A stretch of DNA of 22,852 nt, taken from NCBI GenBank assembly GCA_977017575.1, contig CDRNVI010000208.1:1-22852 (forward strand), given 5' to 3'. The DNA is from Paramoeba atlantica. Taxonomy: Eukaryota; Protista; Discosea. A program made the position numbers and the translations under genes. Below, piece after piece: positions 5,646-22,852 of the stretch; positions within the stretch are counted from its first letter, which is position 1; every line of letters starts with the position of its first letter. Below the pieces are notes generated by a model. The model did no database searches and was not told where the DNA came from. It saw only the letters and a program-made list of their open reading frames with translations.

Positions 5646-8600
5646 ATGACTAAACTCAGGAAGAAGAAGAATAAGAAGAGAAAGGAAAAGGGATTGGTGG
5701 ATATTAGAAGTAGCTTTGGTGTGGGCCCCCAGGTAGCCCCTCCCCTGACAACAAACTTGCCTAATGTATCCCAGTCAGAGTGCCTCCCATCAGGTCCTCC
5801 GAGTGAGCCAAGAGTTGACCCCCGTGATAGGTCCTCAGCTAATTTAAGTGAAAGTGATGAACGTAGGTTTCCTGATGCACGTGTTATCTCCTGGAACATG
5901 AATGGGATTCAAAATTTCGAAAAATTGAGAACCCTTCGGAAGATGGCTGGGAGTTGTCGGCCTCTTTTCATTTTGATTCAAGAATCTCACTCTGATTTTG
6001 AATGCGACCTCAATCTCATCAGGAACCAATTGAGGAAGTATATCTGGTTGAGAGACAACTCCTCTGGGAAGAGGAGGGGTCTGCTCATTGGAGTTAGGCG
6101 GATGGAGGGGGTGAAAGAGATCTCTCCCTGTTTCTTTGACCAGACCGTGAGTGGATTATTTGGTGTCCATGTGACTATTGGATCGACGAACTATTCTGTC
6201 CTGAATATATACCGTCACCCTGACCTCAAAGTAGCCACCATCTCGCAGGAGGCCGCTCGTTTTTTCGGCCAGAACCTCAGGAGCATAAATATCTTTGGGG
6301 GTGATTTCAATTGGGATGTGAAGGAAAAACAGATGGGGGAAATTGAAAAGTGTTGTGCTTCTCTCTGTATGTCACGCTTGAAATGGGATGAACCCACCCA
6401 TTATAAAGGGAGGTGTATCAACCATATCTTCTTCTCATCCAAGGCTCCATTAAAATGCTTGTTTATCAATGCCATCCCATCCGGCTTTAAAGATCATGCA
6501 CTGCTGATTGGAGGATCCTCGTTTAAGGAATGGGAGATTCGGGCAAATAAGAAATCCATCCCTGAGTATCTGATTAATGACCATGGGTTCATCAACACTC
6601 TTATTGAGAGGATGGGTACCTTCTCCGAGGGTGATGATCCCAATGAGTTTTTGACCAGATTTAAGACCACAGCTTGGGAATTAGTTCCCTACTGGAGAGA
6701 AAGAAACACTGAGGTGGCATTGTTTAGAGAACTGTGGAAGATCCACTCTCTTGTAAGATCCCTTCACAATTCTCGCATTCTTAGGAAATCTACTGTCCAG
6801 AGGCCATACTCTTCCCTTGAAATGGGTCTGTTGGACCAGGCCTCCCTTGGTTGGAAAGGTCCGAAGGAAGGGAAGTCGTGGAGGAGAGGAATAATCCCCA
6901 GAATGATTTCTGCAGTGCTCAAGAAGATTGAATGCATTGAAGGACAGTTGGGGATCTTTATTGACAGTCACCCTGCGAGGCCTAAAGCGAGATCATCCCC
7001 AAGGGTTAAAGGAATTGTTGTGGATGGGGTCATTTCCAGAGATAATGGTGTGGTCCAGAAAGCAATTAAAGAATTTTGGGGGAATCTATTGGGCTCAGTG
7101 AGGCCATACAACAAGGACTCCCTCCAAAAGCTGATTGAAAACCATAAACCTCGGTTTCCTAAGGTGGATTACCATGTTGTTGATGGGGCCAAGGTTGATA
7201 AACTGCTGTGACGGTGCAATAATTCAAGTGCTGGCCCAGATGGTATCCCCTTTGCTCTCTACAGAGTGACAAGCGAACAGCTGTGTGATATGTGGTGTGA
7301 ACTTATCCAGAGAGCTGGGGAATCAATGGATTTCCCTGAGTCGTTTGGGGAGAGTCAGCTTGTGTTACTACCTAAGATTGAGAATATTCCTCGTCCTGAC
7401 CAATTTCGACCAATAAGTATTACCAATTCTGATTATTGGATTGTGATGAGATATTGGGCCAAATGGCTGATGGAGTGTGCCAGAGAGGTGATTTCCCCAG
7501 AACAAAATGCTATATTTGCTGGAAGGTCCATTGATAATGCAGTGGAATCGATACATGATGGGTTTATGGAAGCGGTAGCGGAGGGCAAAGATGTGACCAT
7601 CTTCCAAACTGATTTCTGTAAGGCCTATGACTATGTTAACCGTGAAGCCCTTATGGAGTTGCTGATTGGGTTGAATGCTCCACCCCAAGCCCTTGAAGTT
7701 GTATCTAAAGTTCTGCGAGAGTCAGATACATGGCTCCCAACTGTAGGATCAAATGATAAGACACAGAAGGAAGCCATCAAGAGCCGGACTGGTGTGCGAC
7801 AAGGCTGCCCCATTTCACCTCTTCTGTTCATTATTCTTTTTGATGTTTTATTGGTTAGTTTGAACAATGGGGGTGACCTTGAGAAGCTTGCTGGGTTCAT
7901 GGATGACTTAGCCCTTCTCCTTCACAGGGTTCAGTCCATAAATTCCTTGACCTCAACCTTCCAAGAATATGAACAAGGAACCAGGGCCAAACTCAACTAC
8001 AACAAATGCTTTGTATTGTCAACTGAAAAATTCGCTCCTGTGGGCCCTTGGGTTGAAATGCCTTCAGCTAATTATTTGGGAGAGGAGACTGTATACTTGG
8101 GAGTTACAATTTCTTGAAGAATGAACCCAACTAAAGACTGGGAAGGGGTGATCAAGAAAATGCAGAAGGTTGGAACAGCAATTAAGCAAAGGAAAGGCAG
8201 CTTCAAGGAGAGAGTCCGGATGATCAATACTTACCTTATTCCTTGTATGGGTTATTTGGCAAGATTCAAGCTTATCTCGAAAGCTGTCTCCTCAAAGATG
8301 TGGAAGGCCATTCGTTCAGCCTTAGGCACATATGCAAATCTAAAGTCCTGTGTAATGACCTCCCTTCGTCCCCCCTTCTTTGAAAAACCCCAAGTTAGAC
8401 ACCCTATTCTGTTTAACTGGGCTCTGCTGATATCGAGGAAACCTCTCCAAGATCATTATAGGAATCCATTGTCCATTGGGGCCATGAGGATTGATGCTTT
8501 GGAAGCTAGTGGCACTATCTCAGAACAAGTGAGGATGGGCTCCAAAACCAAGAGATCCTTCTCTCTCCTCTCTCGGAACATTTCTGTGGGAGTGGAGAAT

Positions 8601-9839
8601 TTCTATGTGGGGGATGGGTGCTTGAAATGTGTGATCTATAATTTGTCTCTTCCACAAAGACCCCAGATTAAGCGGAACCTTTTGAAATTCTTTTTGAGGG
8701 GTCTTCCAACTGTGGATAAGATTGCCCATTTTACATCTGTGAGTCCACTTTGTCGGCTGTGTAGGAAAGCCAAAGAGTCAAGGGTGCACCTCCTTGAAGA
8801 ATGTCTGAAAGCTAAGGCAATTTTGAAAACTATTGGGAGGAGATGCTTTGTTTTAAAGATTCCTGGGTGGGAGAGTGCCGACTTTGTGTGTGGATTTATG
8901 AACCAGTATCTAAAGAAGGCTGAAGCATCTGCAGTGAGTGCAGCCCTATTGAGCTTGTGGATCACTGTATGTGCAGAAGGATCGAAGTCCCCAAGCTTTG
9001 CTGTTAAAATTTTTGATGAAATTGCTAAGACAAACAAGATGATCCCCAAACAAACTATAAGAAAGGCTCCCCCCAAAGGTAAAAGAGAAGTGAAACAACC
9101 AAAGTTCAAGTACCCTGCCTTGCAAGTGTTTTATGATGGCTCTGGGCATGTAGACCCCCACATCGGGGGATCTGGGTATGTGATTATTAAGGAAGGTTTG
9201 GAGGTTGGAGGTGGATTTGAAACAATCCCACTAGGCTCAAATAACTTGGGTGAGTTTTCGGGATGCTTAGCTGGTCTACAACAAGTTATTGGCTTTGGGC
9301 AACGTGTAGAGATGGTGGGAGATTGTAAAATTCTGACTGAGGCAGTGCCTAAGACGAAACCGATTGATAACTTTGAGCTCAATGAGATCCTATCTGAGAT
9401 CAGAAATATTGCTGAGAGTAAATTTGCCAAAGTGGAGTACACTCATGTGTATCACGAATTCAACAAGAAATCAGATGCGATTGCAACGGCAGCAAGTCAC
9501 TCTGAAGAGGATGGAATGGAAGCTGTGTTTGATAGGAACTGGGATCCAAGATCGAAACAACTAGCAACAACCAGTGAGGAATGGATTATTGAGAATTCCA
9601 AGCTGTGGAAGTGGGTGATGGAACCGTTGGATTTGGATTGAAGCTTCCTTGTGAAGAAAGTTCAGTTTAAGAGGAGGTTTAAGGACAAGGTGATTACAAC
9701 TAATAATGTTTACTTCCCAGTACAAGCTGCACTGGATGGGGTGATGATTTCTCCTGTGTTCATTTCAGATGATATTGTCAAGTGGTTTCCAGAAAGAGCC
9801 ACCACATTCGATTTTTCAAAAATCGCGCACTTTTTTTGA
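5646..9839 (+). pseudogene. LINE ORF2: AP endonuclease + reverse transcriptase + CCHC zinc finger + C-terminal RNase H, interrupted by 3 in-frame TGA
   Basis: ORFs 5646, 7266, 8121 and 9651 share one frame, with TGA at 7209, 8115 and 9639. APE motifs ISWNMNG, IQESH, GGDFN, DHALL (~5883-6515). RT motifs AGPDGI, FRPISITNSD, DFCKAYD, GVRQGCPISPLLF, FMDD, YLGV (~7230-8110). CRLC-x7-H-x4-C (8751-8803). RNase H motifs FYDGS, NNLGEF, GDC, NKKSDAIA (~9123-9500). Confidence 0.92.
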
Positions 9840-12569
9840 GTCCCTATTTTGGACGGCGTTTGCGTTCTTGTGTTTTCTCGTGTTTTTCTTTTGTGCTTCT
9901 CTTCGCTTCTGCCATCCACTTTTTTGGTCTTTGTTTGAAGTCTTTTCAAGGTTTGTTTTTTGATTTTGATTCATTTTTTGATGTTCTTTGAAATAATGTA
10001 TTTTTAAAGAACCAAAAAAACAACTTTTATGGGAGAAATGTTGAAAAGTGTTAAAAAAGTGTTGGTCAAACTGCCAATATCTCCCCTTGAAAGAGAAGAT
10101 GTCCTTTTCTATTTTGGTTCTACTTTTTTCTCCATATTCTAAAGTCTAAGAATAAATAGATCGGGCAATTTTTTGAAAATGGGCACACCCGAATCTCACA
10201 GAAACACCAAAAAGATTTTTGGAAAGAGATCAAAAAGATTAAAAAAGTCAAAAGGACAAAACAACCTGGTTTAACTTTCTTTTTAAATGACAATTTTTCA
10301 ATTTTTCTTCCGAACAAAAATAGAACAACTTCCAATCATCAACACTTCTGTTATTCATGAAAAACAATGGGAAAGGAGAGCTTTTACATCTCAAATCAAG
10401 AGGAAAACAGAAGAGATTACAAACTTTAAAGTGGTTTATCTCTTCGAAGGTATGAAGGAACACAGATTAAAGAGGATAAACCTTTTGAAACACTGAACTT
10501 GAACTTTTGAAAAGTTCAAGTCCAGCATTTCAAAAAGACTGATTCAAGAACTCGTTCATTGTCTGCCCATTGGGAAGCGAGTTGTGAAGAAAGCGATTCG
10601 AAAAGGTTAATTCATTTTTTTTTTGTGTGTGTTTTGAAGGATTATAATTTCTTAAAATTTAATAAATAGACTTTCAAAACCTCGAGAAATCTGATGATTT
10701 GAAACAAGCACAGTTTGTGAATATGATGATGAATAATATGGGTTACTAAAAAATCCAAATGATGTGATGATATTTCAGTAAGTCTTAGATCCTTTGTCTA
10801 GGGAGCCAATACACTTGAAATCACCAGAGTTTGAAATTCCATTTCCAAAACTTCCTGCTCCAAAGCCGGCGATGGATTTTGGGGAGAAACTGTTGCTGGT
10901 TTGGTTTTAAAATAAGTTCTCAACAACAATAGTGCTTTTTCCTGGTTTCCTTGTTAAAATAATGTGGTTGTCCTAGTTTTGAATAATCCATTGGTTTTGA
11001 GAGTCCATGTGAACCACTTGCTTTCTTTCAACTCATTCTTCCAACAATTTTAGAAACCTGTATTGTGTGGATTCAAAAAAGATATTTTTAAAAATGATAA
11101 GAATAATAAAATAAAAAAAGAAAAGAAAAAAGAGGAAGGAGAAAAAAGGAAAAAAAAAGAGAGAATAAAAAGGAAGAATAAAAAGGAAGAAAAAAAAAGA
11201 AAGAAAAAAAGGGGAGAAAAACGAAAGAAAAAAAAGAAAAAAAAAGAAAAACAAGATGATCAAACGGAAACACAACCTTCTCTTCAAGCACTTTCCAAGA
11301 CACCAAACTCTTATTTGTTTTTACAAGTTCTCATACAGTCGAAAAACAAAAATGATCAAATAATAAAGGTGAAGGAGGAGAGAGAGAGTAGAATAACTAT
11401 CCTTAGATGGCTCTGAAAAACGAACAGGAGGAAACAATAACATCGAGAGAGGAAAAGGGTTTTTTGGTGATAATGTCCATGAAGAAGAAAACAAAGAATC
11501 ATGGGGAATTGGTTGACAGAGCAAGAGTTCCATTTTTAATCTCCTTCTTTTCTTTTTTTGTGATTGAATTCATTTTTTTCTTTTGAGATTGAATCTGGCA
11601 AGCATTTTGAAAAAAGAATCAAAAATTTGAAAGAAAAAAAAGCAAAAAAATTAGCAATTTTCGTCTTGGATTCTTTTCAGATTACTTTTTTTCTTTTTTT
11701 TTATTCGAAAAATACAGCCAAAACGATTTAGTTCAAGTCCTTTGTTTTTTTTTCTTTTTTTTTCTTCTTGTTTTTTGTTTTTCTCTCAAATGTCTAAATA
11801 AACTGCTCACTCTGTTTGGACCTGAACTCCTTCTCGAAGACTCTTTCAACAAAGATTTTTGCTTGATTGAAGAATTTTGGCTCTCAATTGCTTGTGGGAC
11901 AGTTCTTCATCGTGACAAAAAAGATATTGGGCTTTCTCTTCTCTTTTATTTAGGATGGGAAAATACACCAAGTTTTGAGCTAACCAAGTTGGGTTACATT
12001 TGGAAACACAGTTTTTGAAAAATGAAAATGGATTTTGAATTATGGGTGCTGGGTTTGTGTATCTGATATCTGAAAAAAAAACACAAAATTACCACCTTAA
12101 CAACCATCAAAAAGTTGCTTACGACACCTTTAAACACCGAATTGCTACCAAAAAAAATGGGCCCGAACTTTATTTTTAAAATTCGCATTTTCTCAAAAAT
12201 CGGATGCGGTGAGCTGCACCTGGAGAGATGTTAGAAAGTTTTGTTGAAAAAAAAAACCGTAAATGGAGAGAGGAGTATGAGCAAGCAAGAAACTGTTGGT
12301 TGAAGAGTGCAATGAGACCTTCCATTGTAAGGAAGATTATTAGGCCTATTAAGGCTGTTGAGAAGAAAAGAATTTTGAAAGAGATTTGAATGAGAAATAG
12401 AAAGAAACATTAGAGCTTTTGGCCACTAAGTTGGCGCTGAAGTGGGTTGATCCTACTTGATTATAACAATTTAATTTAAGTGTATTCTTGGATGTCCAGA
12501 TTACACTTCATTTCAATAAATGGCATCTCTGATGTCTAAAATTAAAAAAAAAAAAAAAGATATTCTAAC

Positions 12570-13460
12570 TGTGATTACTGAGGGAGTGTCAACTCTCAAT
12601 CTCACTCTGAGCATGACCGCGAACCATACTATCATGACACCGATCGAGGTGACTACCGAGACCACCAAGACTACTGAGACTACTACTCTAAGGATGGGAG
12701 ACTGAGAAGTGATTCAAAAAGGGATAACCACGAGTGGTGCTGCAGAGAAGATTATAGTGGAAGGAGTAGGGATGGTCAGGGTTCTGGCTGGAAGTGACTG
12801 GTAGAAATAGTAGAATGTGAAGGTTTACTGCTGGAAGGTGTCAAGAAAGCAATTATGATGAAATCCTAGAAGAAGAAGTGCTCTGCAACTACACTGCTGT
12901 TACAAGTATTTGGTGCAAAACTGTTGGGAGAGGCTGAAACCTTGATGCAAGAGAGTGATTGGTGTGACCTCATTTGTGAACCCCCCTACCAGAGGAAGGG
13001 TGTTTATCAATGTAAAAACCCCAAGGCGAGCCAAAAACTGGATTGGAAACCAATTGGTATTGTGGGTGAAATCTACATTGATGATGATATGTTTTTGAGA
13101 TGTATTGTTAGAAGAGAGGAAAGTCAACAGTTTAACCCAGAATCTATACTGTCTTACCACTCATCAGAAGTGATTGATAACATGTTCTACTGGTACATCA
13201 AGAATGGCTATGGAGTTCTTTCTGACAAAGTACCTAATACAGGATTATACATGAAGATGAAACTCAATGGGTCAAAACTACAAATTATCAGTGACCATTC
13301 AAATGTGAACAAAGCTGATGAGATCAGACCAAGATCATTCAAGCTCTTCTCTCCTGAGGATATGAAGTGTATCATGAGAAAAATTGTGGACCTTTGGTTC
13401 TTTTCGTTCGATATATCTAATTTTTTCCACTCCTTTGTTATCTCCAAACTGATGAGAGTG
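12570..13460 (+). mobile_element. Decayed DIRS-like (or other LTR-type) retroelement fragment: R/D/Y-rich region plus N-terminal RT motifs
   Basis: One frame, with TGA/TAG stops upstream of 12924. GLYMKMKLNGSKLQIISDHSNVN...FKLFSPEDM...WFFSFDISNFFHSF fits the pattern F.v.K..G.k.R.I.D.r.lN...FK...w..s.D..aF.h of DIRS-type RTs. Truncated before the YxDD motif where it meets the copia remnant. Confidence 0.55.
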
Positions 13461-13671
13461 TTATTGTTTTGTTTTCGCCTTCCACATAATATCTTGGCAA
13501 TCTTCCCAGGGCACTTCTCTTCTTCAATTCAGGGATCCCAAAAGCATATTCATCAAATAAAATGCTCAAGCTTTGGAAAGTTTTCTGTTGGATCGGGTCA
13601 AATAGCAAAAATCCATGCATATTGTCAGCAGGTCCCAAATTGATTCCAGCTCTTGAAACAGGGTCAGTTTT

Positions 13672-14069
13672 AAATTCAACTATGTCCAACCCTGGGGGGG
13701 CGAGTTCAAATTCCAGTTTTTCAATATTACAGAAAATTTTTCTGGTGCTGTTGAGTGATTTGATTGGAGTGAGGAACTCTTGAAGAAGTGTGAAAATCGG
13801 AACAGATTACATCTCAGCCCTGTCTACTAAAAAGTTGAGGATAAATTCCCTTGGAAGGAGCTTTGGATTATTCTCCCTTCTGATGTGCATCCTCCAGCCT
13901 GAACTTGCAAAAGTTCTAAAGTTCAGCATAAAGACCGACTGAACTAAGCTGAAGTTTAAAAACTTCACCTCTTGTTAGAGGTTAAAAACAAACATAATTT
14001 AATGTAATTCAAATGGCTTAGATTAAGAACTACTAATTGAATAAAGTCTGCCTCAAAAAAAAAAAAAAA
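13672..14069 (+). mobile_element. 5'-truncated retroposed insert with AATAAA, poly(A) tail and 16-bp target-site duplication
   Basis: AAACAGGGTCAGTTTT occurs at both 13656-13671 and 14070-14085. AATAAA at 14040-14045 and an A18 run at 14055-14072. Removing the insert restores the copia frame (RSKTDPVSRAG). Confidence 0.9.
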
Positions 14070-14298
14070 AAACAGGGTCAGTTTTGGAGCGCATTTCTCA
14101 AGGAATATGAGCAAAAGCATGGCAGCCAAAGGTTCTAATTAAATCCATAGAGGGTTTTCTCTCATACAATTTTTCAAGAGGAGTAATCTTCTCACTTTCT
14201 TTCACAGTCATAGAGATTAATTTTGCAGCCATTCTTTCAGCAAATTCCCAAAAATTAGCAGGTAATCCAGCAGCCAGACGAATCGCTTAGGCAGTACT

Positions 14299-15414
14299 TC
14301 ATCGGGTATAATTTCCTCTTTCAGCAATACCATTTTCTTGAAAGCAGCAAAGGCTGGAACAGTGGATTTCTATTCCTTTCTTGCGACAGTATATACTGAG
14401 AGAGGTTTCTTGTCCAATAAATTCAGAGGCTCCATCACATTGTAAAATCTTCACTTTCACACCAGCTTGTCTCTCCAATTTTCGAATTACATCAATTATC
14501 TTATTGCCAGCATCTGATTTTCTTTTAATAAATTGAGATAAATCACAGCCAGAGTAATCTTCAATAATCGAAATCAAGTATTTGTTGTTATGGTAAGAGA
14601 GAGTAGACTTCTCATGCAAATCAATGTGTAACATCTCACCACGGCATCGAAAAGTGCAGCAACCACTATGATGAGGTCTCATCTTGTTCTTCGCAAAAAT
14701 ACAGGCATCACAAACTTGGTCAGGATCAGCAATCAGGTCTTTGTAGTTGGGAGGCAGCCCATGAATGGCTTTCGCACCAATTGTTCTACACAAACCGGAA
14801 AGATGACCATGTCTTTGATGCCATAACTTCAATTCTTTTTCATGTTCAGAATTCAAGGTTTGATGAACTCTCTTCTTTGGTCCAGTTTCATCAAGAGCAA
14901 TGTATTCATCTGCATCAGCTTCTTCGATTACTTTTTGAGTACAATAAACATGGTTCATATTAGGGAGTGGCAAGTGATAAAGTCCATTTCTTTGGCTTCC
15001 AGATAAAATCGTTTCAGCTTCAGAAAGTGGAATTTTCTTTCTTGTCACTTTGACACCATCCTTGTTGAAAATAATCGAGGTGTTCCAAGTCTCACACATT
15101 TGAGATACAGAGAGCAAGTTCAGGGTATAATCTGGCACAACAGAAATATTCTCAAGAAGTTTCATATCTTTTGCTAAATTTAAATCACCTTGAAGGACAA
15201 CTTGGATCAAATCACCATTGGCTTGCGAGATTTCGAGAATTTCATCAGGTTTACAGGCATTCACAAGGTATTCTCTTGATTTCAGAATAGAAGTTGTGCA
15301 TTCAGAATCAATAATCGCTTCATTATCTGAGAAGAGTTGAAGTCTTTTTGTTTCATAGGCAGAGAAAGATTTTAAAACAGACAAAAAGCATACAGGAAAC
15401 CCTTTATTGGTCAT
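14299..15414 (-). pseudogene. Copia pol segment: protease, GAG-pre-integrase HHCC and rve-type integrase core
   Basis: 371-aa ORF from the track with the motifs listed for the copia remnant. The protease DSG motif reads DSE. Confidence 0.88.
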
Positions 15415-15603
15415 CTTAACTTTCCATTCTTCAAACTGTTATTGGAATTCAAGGAACTCATGAAAAGCAATTTCACCAGCTGGTGCCTTAGAAAGAAAGC
15501 ATTTTCGTGCTGTATAGCGTCCAAAACCACAATTAAAACATTTATATGGTCTCTTTGGCAGTTCTTCCCAATCAGGTTGAGTTCAAAGAGCAGAGTACGG
15601 ATC

Positions 15604-15604
<1 letters not shown>

Positions 15605-15643
<39 letters not shown>

Positions 15644-15868
15644 AGGGGTTCAAGATACAATTGTCTGAATTTCCTATCTTTTGTTGTAGTGTGTATTCTT
15701 GTGGCTGGTTGCCACAGAAAATATTATGGAAACCTCTTCACCCAGTGTAAAGGAAGGAGAAGAAATTCCTGCCAGAAACGCCTGGTCAGGACAAGCGGAT
15801 AGTGAATCATTTGCTCAAATTGTAAAAAAAAGTGAAAGAAAGAAAAGACCTCTTGAAACCAAGGAAGG
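15605..15868 (+). mobile_element. Second copy of the LINE 5' end (A37 + 5' UTR + first ~50 codons of ORF1), 3'-truncated
   Basis: 15642-15868 aligns by eye with 3207-3443 with few substitutions. Preceded by an A-run at 15605-15641. Confidence 0.93.
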
Positions 15869-15999
15869 CTTTCCAGCCCTATACATTGCAAAAAACTAAC
15901 GAATTTTTTCGAAAGATTTACGAATCGAATCGATTAAGGTGACGATTCTATCCGAAAGAGACGAAAAACATCGAAGCATAAGGTGTGCTAAAAAAGAAA

Positions 16000-17484
16000 C
16001 CTTTTGTTTTTCTTTGATTTTCTCAATTCTTTCTTTTGATTGTGTGTGGAAAAGTGAAATGATTGATCCGGTGGTGTTGTTTTTAATAGTTTGTGAATAA
16101 AGAAAAAAAAAAAGAATAACAAACTAAAACATTCACTTGAAATATGGAATAAAAAAGTTCATTGGTAAATCAAACAATCTATCATGTATCTTTCCAAACC
16201 TTTCAACTCTTCTTTTCTTTCAATTTCTTTCTTTTCTTTTTCTGTTTTTCTGTTTTTTTCTCACCCGCCGCTTTCTTTTCCGAAAAAGAAAAAAAAAATC
16301 CAATTCCCAATCAAATGTTGCCACATCATCCATTTTCTTTTTCTTTTTTTGGTTTTTTTTTTTGGTTTTTTGTTTCGAACAGTTTTTTTTTTCTTTTTTG
16401 TTTGTGAGAAAGAAAGAAAAAAAGAAAAAGAAAGAGAAAGAGAAAGATTCAACAAAAAAGAGAAAAAAACAAAAAAAAACAAAGAAAAAGGATTGTATGA
16501 CCAAAATTGATTGAAAAAATCCAAATGCAAACCAAAAATAAGATTAAAGAAGAAAAAAAGAAAAAGAATTGAATTTGTATTGGTCCTATCTTGATGGAAG
16601 CTTGAACAACTAAGAAAAAACAAGAACATTTGAATTCTTTTTCACCTCCTTGCCAAATTTCAAGAAAAAAAATCGCACCCAAAATAAAAATCGGTTTTTC
16701 GGCAAAAAAGTTTTTCTTTTTTGTTTTTTGTTTTTGTTTGATTTTTGTGTTTGGTTTTTGTTTTTTGAAAGATGAGAAAAATAGACTTTTAGAAATCAAG
16801 AGATTTTTGGTTTTTTCAATGTATCACTTTTATATTAAGAAAGAGAAATGAAAAACCAATCTATTTTTCTCAAAGTGAGAAAGATAAGAGAATTCACAAG
16901 GTTTATCCGGTGATTCAATTCTTTGAGGTTTTCTTTCTTTTCTTTTTTCCTCTTCTTTTTCTTGTTTCTTTTTTTCTTTTTCTCTTTTTTTTTTTCGTTT
17001 CTTTTTTCTTCTTTTTCCTTCATCTCTTTTTCTTTTTTACTTTTTTTCACACAAAATTGTTTTTTTTTTTTCTTTTGGTTTTTTTCTTTTGGTTTTTTTC
17101 TTTTTCTCTTTTTTCTTTTTCTCTTTTTCTTTTTCTTTTTTGAAAAGATTTAGAAAAATGAAAAACTAATTCTTTTTATTCTCAGAATGAACAAAATAAA
17201 AAAAATCAAAAGGGATTCATTTTCTTTTGTGTTGAGTGGGAACAGGATTTCTTTTTTTTCAATGGTTTTTTGATTTCTTTTTTGATTTCTTTTTTTCTTT
17301 TTCTCTCATTTTCTTCTTTTTTTTTTCTTTTTGTTTTTTTTTATTTCTTTTTTATTTCAGGGTTTTGAAAGCTTAAAAATATGAAAGTTTGTTTTTTGTT
17401 GTTTCTTTTGAGTTTTAATCTTTTTGTTGATATTCGGAATTTTTTTTGTTTTATTTTTTTTTATTTTAATTGTTTTTTTTTTTT
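16000..17484. repeat. Low-complexity A-rich/T-rich DNA
   Basis: Alternating poly-A and poly-T/pyrimidine tracts. The ORFs called here are poly-F or poly-K artefacts. Confidence 0.8.
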
Positions 17485-18983
17485 AGAAACTGTTCTTTAT
17501 CATTGAAAATAACATCGTCTTATTCCCTGTGATTTACTGTATCCAAAGAATCCTATTTTTCTCTTAGATAAAGCACAATGTGATGTGATGTGATGGGTTA
17601 GAGGTTCAGTTTCTTTTTTCCAACATTTTTTTAAACAATATTTAAATAATTAAAGTTTTAATGTTTTTTCCTTCAGAAACTGTTCTTTATCATTGAAAAT
17701 TATATCGTCTTATTCCTTGTGATTTACTGTATCCAAAGAAGCCTATTTTTCTCTCAGATAAAGCACAATGATGTGATATGAGGGGTTCAGTTTCTTTTTT
17801 CGGGTATTTTTTTAAACAATAACTAATTACTTTTTTTATTGTTTTTTCCTTCAGAAACTATTCTTTATTATTGAAAATAATATCGTCTTATTCCTTGTGA
17901 TTTACTGTATCCAAAGAAGCCTATTTTTCTCAGATAAAGCACAATGATGTGATATGAGGGGTTTAGTTTCTTTTTTTCGATATTTTTTTAAACAATAACT
18001 AATTACTTTTTTTTATTGTTTTTTCCTTCAGAAACTGTTCTTTATTATTGAAAATCACATCATCTTATTCCTTGTGATTTACTCTCTCCAAAGAAGCCTA
18101 TTTTTCTCAAATAAGCACCTGATGTGATGTGAGAGGTTCAGTTTCTTTTTTTCGGTATTTTTTTAAAGAGTAACTAATTACTTTTTTTTATTGTTTTTTT
18201 CTTCAGAGAGTGTTTTTTATCATTGAAAATCATATCATCTTATTCCTTGTGATTTACTGTATCCAAAGAAGCCTATTTTTCTCAGATAAAGCACTTGATG
18301 TGATATGAGGGGTTCAGTTTCTTTTTTTCGATATTTTTTTAAACAATAACTAATTACTTTTTTTTATTGTTTTTTCCTTCAGAAACTGTTCTTTATCATT
18401 GAAAATCACATCGTCTTATTCCCTGTGATTTACTCTCTCCAAAGAAGCCTATTTTTCTCAGATAAAGCACTTGATGTGATGTGAGGGGTTCAGTTTCTTT
18501 TTTTCAATATTTTTTTAAACAATAACTAATTACTTTTTTTTATTGTTTTTTCCTTCAGAGAATGTTCTTTATCATTGAAAATTACATCGTCTTATTCCTT
18601 GTGATTTACTCTCTCCAAAGAAGTCTATTTTTCTCAGATAAAACACAATGTGATGTGATGGGTTAGAGGTTCAGTTTCTTTTTTCTAGTATTTTTTTAAA
18701 CAGTAATTAATTACTTTTTTTTATTGTTTTTTTCTTCAGAGAGTGTTTTTTATCATTGAAAATTACATCGTCTTATTCCTTGTGATTTACTTGTATTTAA
18801 AGAATCCTATTTTTCTCTCAGATAAAGCACAATGTGATGTGATGGGTTAGGGATTTAGTTTCTTTTTTCTGATATTTTTTTAAATAATATTTAAATAACT
18901 TTTTGTTTTAATGTTTTTTCTTTCAGAGAATGTTCTTTATCCATTGAAAAATTGTATCGTCTTATTCCTTTTGTGATTTACTC
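17485..18983. repeat. Subtelomeric tandem satellite, ~175-190 bp unit, 8 full units plus a partial ninth
   Basis: Unit starts (AGAAACTGTTCTTTATC-like) at about 17485, 17675, 17853, 18030, 18205, 18381, 18557, 18738 and 18925. Confidence 0.95.
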
Positions 18984-19191
18984 TTGCTTTGAAACCACCA
19001 AGAAATAAGAGCACTCTTATTTTTTAATGGACTGAGATTTTTTTGTGCTTTGGTTTTCTTTCTTTTTTTTCTTTTTTTCTTTTTTTTCTTTTATTTTTTC
19101 TCTTCTTTTTCTTTTTTTTTCTCTCTTTTATTCTTTTTTGTTTCTTGCTCCTCCAATCCTTTTTTTTTTTCTCTTCTCCCTCTTTCTTCCT

Positions 19192-19246
<55 letters not shown>

Positions 19247-20423
19247 TCTTTTTTCTTTTTGCTAATTTTCCTCTTTTGCCTCTTTCTCTCTTACCAAAGT
19301 ATTGTTGGGGGTTTAGGGGTGATATTGTGGACCACATCTAATTAGGTTTACAAGCTTCTCTCCCTCTCCTTTCATTGCTCCTCCTTTTTTCCTTCCCTTC
19401 CTCCTTCTCTCTGTGTTCAATTTGCTTTCCTTTCTTTTGTTTCATCTTTGACACGTCCTGTCCGTGTGCAGCCAAAATCTACTCTCCTCTTTTCTGATTT
19501 ATTTTTTTTCTTTTACTTTCTCTTTTGTTTTTTGGAGTTCAAAATAATAAAAAAGAAAGGTTAAAGGTTTGTTTTGTTTTTTTGAAAAATCAAAAAAATA
19601 TTAATAAAAAAATTAATTTTTGATTTGTTTTATTTTTTGGTTTTTTTGAAAAAAAATGAAAAACACAAACACACAACACAATGATCGCAAATGAAAAACA
19701 AACTAATATCACCTTAACAACAAAGAAAAAAACCATTAACCCTTCCTTTTATCAACACCAACTATATTGCACAAGTCTCCGGACTTATGGAGAGTTGGCC
19801 TCCTCCCTTCAGCAGTGGTGGGTGTGGTGCCCCTCCGTCTGTGTAAAGATGGCAAGAAGATGAAAAATCTGGAAATTGAAACACTAGGGTTTAGGGTTGT
19901 TATTTATGGTTGTTGTTGGTTGTGTTGTTGCCTCTTTATGCTTGGTGAATCAGCAAACACTTTTATTTTTTCTTGGAATAGGGTTTAGACTTCAATTTTC
20001 AGTGTGCCAGTAAGTTGCTTCTTAAATCTTTTTTTTTTGTTTTAAGAACTCTGCCAACATAGCGGTAGAGTTCTCTTTTGTTTTCTTTCTTCTCTAAACC
20101 CACAAATATTCTAACAAAAAAAAAAACAAAAAAATTCTCAAAAATTCTCAAAAAAATTCTCAAAAAATTCTCAAAAAAAAACAAAAAAAATTCTCACAAA
20201 AAAAAAAAATAAAAAAAAGCAGAGTTCCTACCCCCTCCCATTTTTCAGGCACAAAAATCCCTTTTTTGCAGACACTTTTTTTTGAGAATTTTTTGAGAAT
20301 TTTTTGTTTTTTTTTTTGTTTTTTTTTTTATTTTTTTTTTATTTTTTTTTTATTTTTTTTTTTTTTTTTGAATTCTCCACACAAGAGAAATATTGAACAC
20401 ATTTTTTGTGTTAGTTTCTTTCC

Positions 20424-21645
20424 ATGTCCCATAAAGTCCTTTTTCCCTCTCTTCGTCAAAAAGACCGCCGAACATACTGGTGTTTACAAAAAAGAGAAGA
20501 AAGAGAAGCAAAAAAGCGAAAAGTGCAAGCGATGAATGAGGACAATTTTTACTTAACAGCATTTCAATGCAACCCCCCTTCCTCTTCTTCTTTACTACCT
20601 TTGAGAAAGGAGGAGGAGAAGTTTACGATATTACCACCTTTTTCAGTTTCTATTCCAGAGCCTTTCAAAAATTATTATCTTTCCTCCTCCGTTCTCAGCA
20701 GCAGCAGCAGAAGCAGCCTTTTAAACCCTCTCAACAAACCTGGAAAAGAACACAAAATTCTTCCCTTTTTTTCACTTCACGAATATCATATCTTTACGAA
20801 CACAAACCTTCCTCAACCACTTCTAACATTTCCACCAGTTCTTTCCCAATATTTGAGCATCTTCTTTTTCTTTTTGAAGAATTCTTGTCGTTTTTCACAA
20901 AAACAAACTTCAAAAAATTTTGATCTTAAAGGAACAATTATGATTGGGTATACTGTTAATGCAATTGGGGCAACAGGTTTTTTCTTTAATTTTTTTTTCT
21001 TTAATTTTTTATCTCTTTTTTCTTTGTTTTTTTCGTTTATCTTTTTTCTCTAACCTTATTTTTGTTTCTTTTTCGTCTGTTCGTCTTACACCCTAACCCA
21101 CCCACCCCCTTTAATTGTTTTCCCCTAATTTTGGATTAGGTTTTGAAAAACCCCACAATTTTGTCCGCCATTTTGGAGTTGCTAATAATCCACTCGAACG
21201 AAAAATTCCCCAATGGAAAAAACAATTATGGCTTCAAGGGAAATACCTATGTTCTCTTCTCGATGATCGCTTCGCTTCTGGGGAATTTGTAATCTATGTT
21301 TCTTTAATGACATCGAATGACCAATCAGTCAAATGGCACTCTGATGAACGCGATATTACATTTCAAATTGTTATTTTTTTAGGAACGTTTGTCGGTGAGA
21401 GTTTTTTTGAATTTGAAGACCCAACAGGAGCATATACAATTCGAATTCCAATTATTCCAGGAACAATAATTGTTTTTGACGGACGTTTGCGACATCGAAA
21501 AATTGCAATGGAAAGTTTTCGTGGGGAACAATACACTGTTATTTTTTTTAAAAATTATGACCAGCAATTCTCTTCCCCGGATAATATTATGTGGCCTCCT
21601 CACTCTTATCATATTTCTTATAATAAAAATATTCTTTTTTTTTAA
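20424..21645 (+). CDS. Spliced 2OG-Fe(II) dioxygenase, TET/JBP-like candidate (exon 20424-20976, intron 20977-21139, exon 21140-21645; ~352 aa)
   Basis: A phase-1 GT...AG intron with CCCTAAT branch-like site (~21122-21128) joins ORF 20424 in frame to ORF 21115 (...NAIGATG-FEKPHN...). Motifs WHSDERD (HxD, 21337-21345), LGTFVG, PGTIIVFDGRLRH (distal His 21493) and GEQYTVIFFK. The start codon and any upstream exons are uncertain. Confidence 0.7.
20977..21139 (+). other. 163-nt spliceosomal intron (predicted)
   Basis: ACAG|GTTTTT donor, T-rich body, CTAAC/CTAAT branch candidates, TAG acceptor, and frame restoration across the junction. Confidence 0.75.
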
Positions 21646-21896
21646 ATTCAAAAAAATTCAAAGATCTTTAATTGTTATTTTTATGGTGGGTAGTTTCAGG
21701 GTTTAAGGTTTTGGAAGAAAAAGAATCAAAAGAAGAAGAAAATCAACAAACATCAAACACCAATCCACCAATTTTCTCTTCTTTTGATTTCGATTCAAAT
21801 ATTAATTCTTTGAAAAAAAAAAGAATTGACACAAAAAAACAACAATGAAAAGATGTCTTTTTATTTGGGACACCGATTTTTTTTTTCGTTTTTTTT

Positions 21897-22852
21897 TTTA
21901 GGGTTTAGGGTTTAGGGTTTAGGGTTTAGGGTTTAGGGTTTAGGGTTTAGGGTTTAGGGTTTAGGGTTTAGGGTTTAGGGTTTAGGGTTTAGGGTTTAGG
22001 GTTTAGGGTTTAGGGTTTAGGGTTTAGGGTTTAGGGTTTAGGGTTTAGGGTTTAGGGTTTAGGGTTTAGGGTTTAGGGTTTAGGGTTTAGGGTTTAGGGT
22101 TTAGGGTTTAGGGTTTAGGGTTTAGGGTTTAGGGTTTAGGGTTTAGGGTTTAGGGTTTAGGGTTTAGGGTTTAGGGTTTAGGGTTTAGGGTTTAGGGTTT
22201 AGGGTTTAGGGTTTAGGGTTTAGGGTTTAGGGTTTAGGGTTAGGGTTTAGGGTTTAGGGTTTAGGGTTTAGGGTTTAGGGTTTAGGGTTTAGGGTTTAGG
22301 GTTTAGGGTTTAGGGTTTAGGGTTTAGGGTTTAGGGTTTAGGGTTTAGGGTTTAGGGTTTAGGGTTTAGGGTTTAGGGTTTAGGGTTTAGGGTTTAGGGT
22401 TTAGGGTTTAGGGTTTAGGGTTTAGGGTTTAGGGTTTAGGGTTTAGGGTTTAGGGTTTAGGGTTTAGGGTTTAGGGTTTAGGGTTTAGGGTTTAGGGTTT
22501 AGGGTTTAGGGTTTAGGGTTTAGGGTTTAGGGTTTAGGGTTTAGGGTTTAGGGTTTAGGGTTTAGGGTTTAGGGTTTAGGGTTTAGGGTTTAGGGTTTAG
22601 GGTTTAGGGTTTAGGGTTTAGGGTTTAGGGTTTAGGGTTTAGGGTTTAGGGTTTAGGGTTTAGGGTTTAGGGTTTAGGGTTTAGGGTTTAGGGTTTAGGG
22701 TTTAGGGTTTAGGGTTTAGGGTTTAGGGTTTAGGGTTTAGGGTTTAGGGTTTAGGGTTTAGGGTTTAGGGTTTAGGGTTTAGGGTTTAGGGTTTAGGGTT
22801 TAGGGTTTAGGGTTAGGTTTAGGGTTTAGGGTTTAGGGTTTAGGGTTTAGGG
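21897..22852 (+). repeat. Telomeric array (TTTAGGG)n, G-strand running toward the chromosome end
   Basis: About 136 near-perfect heptamers reaching the window end, with rare variants (e.g. TTAGGG near 22240, TTAGG near 22813). Confidence 0.99.

Follow-up and report, generated by a model that had tools for sequence, protein, structure and literature searches.

The contig CDRNVI010000208.1 of Paramoeba atlantica (22,852 nt, called the window below) ends in a telomere array, and the last gene before that array is predicted to encode a double-stranded beta-helix dioxygenase that depends on 2-oxoglutarate (2OG) and Fe(II). By sequence comparison, the product belongs to an unnamed 2OG/Fe(II) branch of protists and eukaryotic viruses that has no Pfam model, and its closest characterised relative by sequence is Naegleria Tet1 (NgTet1). 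The best explanation of the data as a whole, which we hold with slightly better than even confidence, combines a TET-like branch, a rebuilt co-substrate site and a telomeric position that is incidental.

The gene model and its splice junction

The window holds two open reading frames (ORFs) on the forward strand, listed at 20424-21053 and 21115-21645, which a note made earlier from the letters of the window (the earlier note) had joined in frame over a canonical intron. The gene is composed of the following parts.

20424 to 20976, forward strand: exon 1, with its ATG at 20424, placed from the ORF listing, the family profile and alignment to exon 1 of the paralogue L002; it encodes 130 residues of low complexity at the N-terminus and, after them, the dioxygenase domain from its N-terminal helix through its first strands
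20511 to 20522, forward strand: KKRK basic patch, residues 30-33, read off the translation
20977 to 21139, forward strand: intron of 163 nt, GT...AG, T-rich, phase 1
21140 to 21645, forward strand: exon 2, which encodes the dioxygenase catalytic core, with its stop codon TAA at 21643-21645

The donor GT occupies 20977-20978 and the acceptor AG 21138-21139; the codon split by the intron (g at 20976, gt at 21140-21141) encodes Gly and keeps the frame open. The translations of the two exons were used as separate queries, and the junction was examined with a profile built from 58 non-amoeba homologues only. Exon 2 matches this profile with an expectation value (E) of 5e-48 and places its residue 1 at profile position 58, while exon 1 residues 160-183 align to positions 32-55. 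Since exon 1 ends at position 55 and exon 2 starts at 58, Thr184 and the Gly of the split codon fill positions 56-57 exactly; the intron itself, translated in three frames, has no match to the same profile. The intron-less homologue P0007 reads NALGATGFTTPHNF over the junction, where the spliced window product would read NAIGAT-G-FEKPHNF. Moreover, the intron of the diverged paralogue L002 (88 nt, GT-AG) has the identical codon position and phase, and both donor and acceptor are kept in every aligned copy of the gene. The continuity of the profile, the intron-less homologue and the intron in the same place in L002 all bear out the in-frame join, and these comparisons establish an intact two-exon gene. 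The predicted spliced product has about 352 residues, made up of the low-complexity N-terminus and a compact double-stranded beta-helix domain, and the KKRK patch near its start looks, in the translation, like a nuclear localisation signal. The telomere array begins 251 bp past the stop codon, in agreement with the earlier note's description of the last gene before the telomere, about 250 bp away.

Catalytic residues and fold

The residues that identify the catalytic core are listed below in exon 2 numbering, and conservation is counted throughout over an alignment of 110 family sequences, with fewer sequences at some positions.

21337 to 21354, forward strand: HxDxxD motif, read as HSDERD (H66, D68, D71), in which His66 and Asp68 are the iron ligands and Asp71 aligns with NgTet1 Asp234
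21484 to 21501, forward strand: R115-L-R-H118-R-K120, with the conserved Arg115, the distal iron-binding His118 and Lys120
21529 to 21531, forward strand: Gln130 (CAA), at the site of the family's Arg for the C5 carboxylate of 2OG (NgTet1 Arg289, TET2 Arg1896)
21547 to 21549, forward strand: Phe136, the aromatic residue six positions after 130, aligned with NgTet1 Phe295

The iron triad is near-invariant, with His66 present in 107 sequences, Asp68 in 106 and His118 in 105. Asp71 is found in 104 sequences and replaced by Asn in 5, Arg115 is found in 102, and position 136 is Tyr or Phe in 103 of 105. Overall, the near-invariant positions of the family are H66, D68, D71, Q75, G81, D113, R115, H118, G128 and R130. 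The distal His is read within FDGRLRH, from the codon at 21493-21495, and it lies where the earlier note had placed it, as do HSDERD, the Gln codon CAA and the terminal GEQYTVIFF strand.

The structure prediction that the earlier note had proposed as a check was run on the homologue P0009. With the 110-sequence alignment, the AlphaFold model of P0009 reaches a mean predicted local distance difference test score (pLDDT) of 96.7 and forms a compact double-stranded beta-helix; the single-sequence prediction for exon 2 gave a pLDDT of 42.7, too low to use. When the P0009 model was used in a fold search, the best matches were all 2OG/Fe(II) oxygenases, with Z scores of 10-11.5. The near-invariant triad and the matches of the homologue model together uphold the earlier note's call of a 2OG-Fe(II) dioxygenase, to which the window product, as judged from its residues and from the modelled homologue, belongs.

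An unnamed family of protists and eukaryotic viruses

An exhaustive profile search of the representative library finds 162 relatives at E<=1e-3, including 62 at E<=1e-10. Members of named origin belong to the prasinophyte Cymbomonas and the diatom Epithemia, and most of the others lie on 1-2 kb contigs of environmental eukaryote data, many of them marine eukaryote transcripts. Atlas shape and feature searches return giant-virus, virophage-type and chlorophyte clusters as the nearest, and the family member P0009 adjoins a gene for a D5-type primase-helicase, which is a viral hallmark.

Standard annotation does not name this family. Neither exon has a Pfam match even at E 10, and an NCBIfam search returned nothing. 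A word search with the protein found only close copies, all from one ENA assembly; with the family alignment, it found only unannotated family members, with no Pfam dioxygenase domain and no bridge to a named family. A phmmer search of exon 2 against PDB gave chance matches only (e.g. a peroxiredoxin), a tblastn search of P0009 against GenBank phages gave no match, and a scan of viral contigs with a 10-sequence alignment gave no confirmed locus. Exon 2 does match phrog_274 of PHROGs (E 1.5e-5), whose label, 'DNA endonuclease V', looks unreliable for a beta-helix domain, and no function was drawn from it.

The domain organisation of several relatives suggests a substrate class. In P0054, P0082 and P0023, the dioxygenase domain is fused, before or after it, to P-loop nucleotide kinase domains (AAA_33, Ploopntkinase3, AAA_16). 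The Atlas shape neighbours include one cluster with a TET-associated glycosyltransferase domain and a further one with a pseudouridine synthase domain. In phages, too, P-loop kinases are associated with thymine dioxygenases (bioRxiv 10.1101/2025.08.14.668559). The kinase fusions and the glycosyltransferase-bearing neighbours together suggest a nucleic-acid substrate.

Probable kinship with TET/JBP oxidases and the hydroxylase alternative

The earlier note had likened the motif spacing to TET/JBP-type enzymes more than to prolyl hydroxylases, and the sequence evidence favours this in part. When the family profile was searched against the 177,635 sequences of PDB, NgTet1 was the sole 2OG oxygenase matched, with an E of 0.003 from 60 sequences that improved to 9e-5 from 110 sequences; at E 10, the search returned no chain of a prolyl hydroxylase, PiuC, AlkB, FTO or JmjC protein. 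NgTet1 is thus, by sequence, the closest characterised relative. The profile alignment pairs H-x-D-x-x-D with H229/D231/D234, the distal His with H279, the G-x-R motif with R289 and the aromatic residue at Arg+6 with F295. R289 of NgTet1 (R1896 in TET2) is the residue that holds the co-substrate by its C5 carboxylate, and the flipped base is held through a contact of D234 with its N4 and through stacking by F295 (PMC7854593). Both base-holding features are present in the family, as Asp71 and as the Tyr or Phe at position 136, in the proportions given above. Like the window protein, NgTet1 (PDB 4LT5, 5CG8) is a compact single-domain double-stranded beta-helix, and it matches the P0009 model with a Z of 10.8 over 163 residues at 17% identity. 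Further, language-model features of exon 2 place Tet_JBP in 14 of the 30 nearest Atlas clusters.

Several observations weigh against this kinship. First, prolyl hydroxylases are the top structural matches (Z 11.3-11.5), followed by PiuC (11.0-11.3), AlkB (11.0), FTO (10.9) and NgTet1 (10.7-10.8), an order whose margins, all within 1 Z, are within noise. Second, neither exon matches any Pfam model at E<=10, Tet_JBP (PF12851) included. Third, a Pfam search of the 110 members at E<=1 matches 16 to 2OG-FeII_Oxy_3 (PF13640; best E 6.2e-6) and 4 to Tet_JBP (E from 0.027 to 1), the latter all below the gathering score of 34.9 bits; the AlkB profile (2OG-FeII_Oxy_2, PF13532) matches one (E 0.089). Fourth, two NgTet1 residues, Arg224, which binds the C1 carboxylate of 2OG, and His297, which contacts N3 of 5-methylcytosine, have no conserved equivalents in the family, and the window Gln replaces Arg289. 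The presence of an Asp after HxD is, in addition, weakly specific, because PHD2 has a similar HxDxxN pattern. No sequence match was obtained to the kinetoplastid JBP1 and JBP2 or to the dinoflagellate TJ1 thymine hydroxylases.

These observations define the alternative that survives best, in which the product, an enzyme of the prolyl-hydroxylase or PKHD (PiuC) type, hydroxylates proteins or small molecules instead of oxidising nucleic-acid bases and its likeness to NgTet1 reflects a shared minimal fold only. PHD2, Pseudomonas prolyl 4-hydroxylase (P4H) and PiuC, which belong with 2OG-FeII_Oxy_3, have a minimal core of the same size as the family and reach the Z scores of 11.0-11.5 just given. 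Prolyl hydroxylases and AlkB show 10-14% structural identity and PiuC-type proteins 16-19% (18-19% for PiuC), against the 17% of NgTet1. A cluster of PKHD-type hydroxylases stands among the Atlas shape neighbours, and 2OG-FeII_Oxy_3 is the commonest weak Pfam match, also found for P0143 and P0119; both score 21 bits, short of the gathering score of 27 bits, and the window exons have no match to it. Against this alternative, the family profile finds NgTet1 and none of the prolyl hydroxylase, PiuC or AlkB chains in PDB, the Z differences of less than 1 amount to a tie, and the P-loop kinase fusions and TET-associated glycosyltransferase neighbours point to nucleic acids; the family's fusion partners are nucleotide kinases instead of protein-modification domains, which sets it apart from prolyl hydroxylases and PiuC. 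We consider a hydroxylase of this kind unlikely.

In the comparison of Tet_JBP, AlkB and P4H profiles that the earlier note had outlined, the exons reach none of the profiles, and the weak matches of relatives favour 2OG-FeII_Oxy_3. Its proviso that best matches to protein hydroxylases would speak against a base oxidase applies only within the noise of the fold scores. Kinship with TET/JBP is likely rather than proven, with the chances about evenly divided, and the family is best described as TET-like without being filed as a member of Pfam Tet_JBP.

Loss of the 2OG-binding Arg

The earlier note had read Gln where the 2OG-binding Arg is expected, and the alignment confirms this reading: of 104 relatives, 97 have Arg at position 130, where the window has Gln. 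The note's further suggestion that the Gln arose by a recent CpG transition in this copy is rejected, because Gln130 is present in every near-identical copy that covers the site (with codon CAA in all five aligned as DNA) and the older paralogue L002 has Met. No paralogue checked retains the Arg. At position 120, the second residue past the distal His, 81 relatives have Val, and only the window and L002 have Lys. From the alternation of residues along the strand, Lys120 should face the same interior as His118, and it is a plausible relocated anchor for the co-substrate. The pattern looks like a rebuilt co-substrate site rather than recent decay.

The divergence between the two amoeba paralogues bears on whether the protein functions. 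Identity between L002 and the window is 58% over exon 2 and 41% over exon 1, and the exons of L002 are intact; its N-terminal basic region is in another frame, so that a further intron may be present. In this part of L002 (713-1715 and 2830-4863), the diverged paralogue adjoins an alpha-amylase-family (GH13) gene. Over exon 2, the proportion of nonsynonymous differences (pN) is 0.264 and that of synonymous differences (pS) is 0.775, with synonymous sites saturated. A pN far below a saturated pS indicates purifying selection on the exon 2 protein between the window and L002, and such selection on the two paralogues makes it most likely that the protein still works. All three iron ligands are kept in both paralogues, as are the other near-invariant residues; L002 also lacks Arg115, where it has His.

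The protein may nonetheless simply be dead with Gln130, unable to bind 2OG without the Arg and either kept as a binding or regulatory protein (e.g. a reader of modified bases) or decaying. The residue replaced by Gln130 is the characteristic 2OG binder (PMC7854593), L002 has lost Arg115 as well, and sister copies of the gene decay through C-to-T changes; several of them (L001, L003, L004 and L005) are pseudogenes. Moreover, because another copy is free of mismatches to the window copy, the intactness of the window copy is silent on selection acting on it. What makes a dead enzyme improbable in our assessment is the strong purifying selection over the catalytic core, the intact iron ligands and other near-invariant residues in both paralogues, the presence of Lys120 in exactly the two sequences without the Arg, and the precedent of CMD1. 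CMD1 is a Chlamydomonas TET homologue that lacks a working anchor for the C5 carboxylate of 2OG and is active with another co-substrate, vitamin C (PMC7854593); it shows that a TET-type protein without a working basic anchor can be an enzyme. The two cases differ in detail: CMD1 retains an Arg that points away from the site, which a Trp occupies, whereas in the window gene the Arg is replaced and a Lys appears at His+2. None of the searches run detected similarity between the two proteins. A stronger version of the parallel, in which the amoeba branch uses a co-substrate other than 2OG, like CMD1, and writes an undescribed base mark on DNA or RNA, perhaps in chromosome-end biology, is in our view very improbable.

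A dispersed block broken and capped by a telomere

The gene lies within a block that is repeated elsewhere in the genome, and the window contains these parts of the block and its end.

15876 to 21899, forward strand: the portion of the repeated block in the window, delimited by sequence comparison with other copies; the whole block is at least 12 kb
17464 to 18982, forward strand: satellite of 176 bp inside the block, 8.4 copies with 88% matches, present in all copies fetched
21646 to 21896, forward strand: 3' flank of the gene, common to other copies, ending in a T-run
21897 to 22852, forward strand: telomere array, (TTTAGGG)137, added where the block breaks off and running to the end of the window

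The copies compared were L001 and L003-L008, with L002 as the diverged paralogue. In the ENA assembly, L001, L003, L004, L005, L006 and L007 carry the block at 93-98% identity, and L008 (contig ctg3978l, 131,952 bp) matches window positions 15886-21899 without a mismatch and with one indel, positions 20161-20201 being left uncompared. Three more copies, found from protein clusters, bring the block to at least 11 copies. Its left boundary is sharp: CTATACATTGCAAAAAAC (window 15876-15896; L001 4342; L004 4573; L007 4089) stands beside four unrelated flanks, and in L008 the first 2.2 kb of the block are tandemly duplicated at this boundary.

The right end differs among copies. All seven fetched copies run past 21899 into shared non-telomeric sequence (the junction was read in L001, L003, L004, L005 and L008), and in the window copy the T-run is followed directly by AGGGTTT repeats, which is, from the sequence, what telomerase leaves when it heals a break. 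Whereas the window copy ends at 21880-21900, the block stops at two other points in L001 and L004 (L001 11795-11815; L004 11145-11170), each followed by AGGGTTTAGG and further shared sequence. These endings look like older healing scars, left by successive breaks and repairs at chromosome ends. Because the window end is a dispersed repeat block that was broken off and capped there, the comparison of copies establishes the telomeric position of the gene as incidental. The link to base J and telomeres that the earlier note had drawn from this position is consequently not supported, the placement being a truncation of the block.

Downstream of the gene, the block holds a second large frame. In L008, an ORF of 2140 residues (12311-18733) lies some 2 kb downstream from the dioxygenase copy identical to that of the window and has weak, collinear matches of superfamily 2 (SF2)/RecQ type (the RecQ motif I region, RecQ5 and the DEAD-box C-terminal domain), all below thresholds; L006 and L003 carry broken versions of it. 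Yeast Y' elements and fungal telomere-linked RecQ-like helicase genes are also multi-copy blocks of chromosome ends with a large helicase-like ORF, and the present block resembles them in its copy number, in that ORF and in the short telomere-repeat remnants at its junctions. It differs from them in that it also holds a dioxygenase gene and a satellite, its helicase call is sub-threshold and at least one copy (L008) is internal.

The gene copies themselves have fared unequally. The window and L008 copies are intact, so that the window copy is not the sole intact one: ctg3978l carries an identical copy. In L006, the frames are open, with changes at the conserved Gly114 and Arg115. L001, L003, L004 and L005 contain stop codons or frameshifts together with changes such as Asp68 to Asn. 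Over the gene region (window 20210-21899), most differences of the decayed copies from the window copy are C-to-T or G-to-A changes, at a rate of 0.27 per CpG site per copy compared with 0.04-0.06 in other contexts, a five- to seven-fold excess; in L005, 30 of 40 changes are at CpG. This bias fits methylation-driven decay of silenced copies.

The CpG-biased decay of silenced copies, the many copies and the sharp common left boundary in at least four different flanks would also suit a gene that is cargo of a DNA transposon, acting for the element against silencing and not for the host; this is distinctly improbable, since no ORF of the block examined contains a transposase domain, the fetched loci contain no inverted copy of the left terminus, the copies end at differing points with telomere repeats or remnants, for which recombination and healing are the better fit, and the old paralogue L002 sits in ordinary gene context beside the alpha-amylase-family gene. 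A block with terminal inverted repeats was accordingly rejected as a candidate for the fetched loci. The features of transposons that carry TET/JBP cargo (the fungal KDZ type), namely a transposase and defined termini, were not found in the portion of the block reached, which stops short of its right end.

Three other features were noted in the window. A long imperfect palindrome lies at about 20110-20310, just upstream of the gene, and is formed by AAAAATTCTC-type repeats against the reverse complement GAGAATTTTT. Upstream of the block are a retrotransposon without long terminal repeats (non-LTR; 5646-9641, forward strand), with 65-67% DNA identity to the RVT_1/RVT_3 gene of L005, and a Copia-like integrase ORF (14299-15414, reverse strand), identified by reading the translation only.

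Proposed function and implications

In the proposed mechanism, the family would stand beside the TET/JBP base oxidases as a sister group or an outlying branch, and its enzymes would oxidise the 5-methyl group of a pyrimidine that they flip out of DNA (or possibly of RNA). The iron would be held by His66, Asp68 and His118, and the base by Asp71 and Phe136, in the manner of Asp234 and Phe295 in NgTet1. In the amoeba branch, the Arg anchor for the far carboxylate of 2OG is gone (Gln here, Met in the paralogue), and the enzyme would either anchor 2OG by the relocated Lys or use another co-substrate, as the algal CMD1 does. The window copy is a very recent duplicate; its break lies 251 bp past the stop codon and was healed on the T-run by the addition of telomere repeats.

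The amoeba genes provide a natural experiment, in which the 2OG anchor is gone and the protein is still under selection. To our knowledge, CMD1 is the sole characterised precedent for the loss of this anchor, and it led to a new DNA modification. If an undescribed mark were indeed written by the amoeba enzyme, it could act in chromosome-end biology, as the gene would travel with a giant helicase-like gene on an element spread by recombination. The locus is, in addition, a clean case of a repeated block in which a chromosome break was healed by adding a telomere. More broadly, the analysis defines a sizeable dioxygenase branch in protists and eukaryotic viruses that is invisible to standard annotation and is probably kin to the TET/JBP oxidases, and its fusions with nucleotide kinases suggest that eukaryotes have base hypermodification pathways akin to those of phages.

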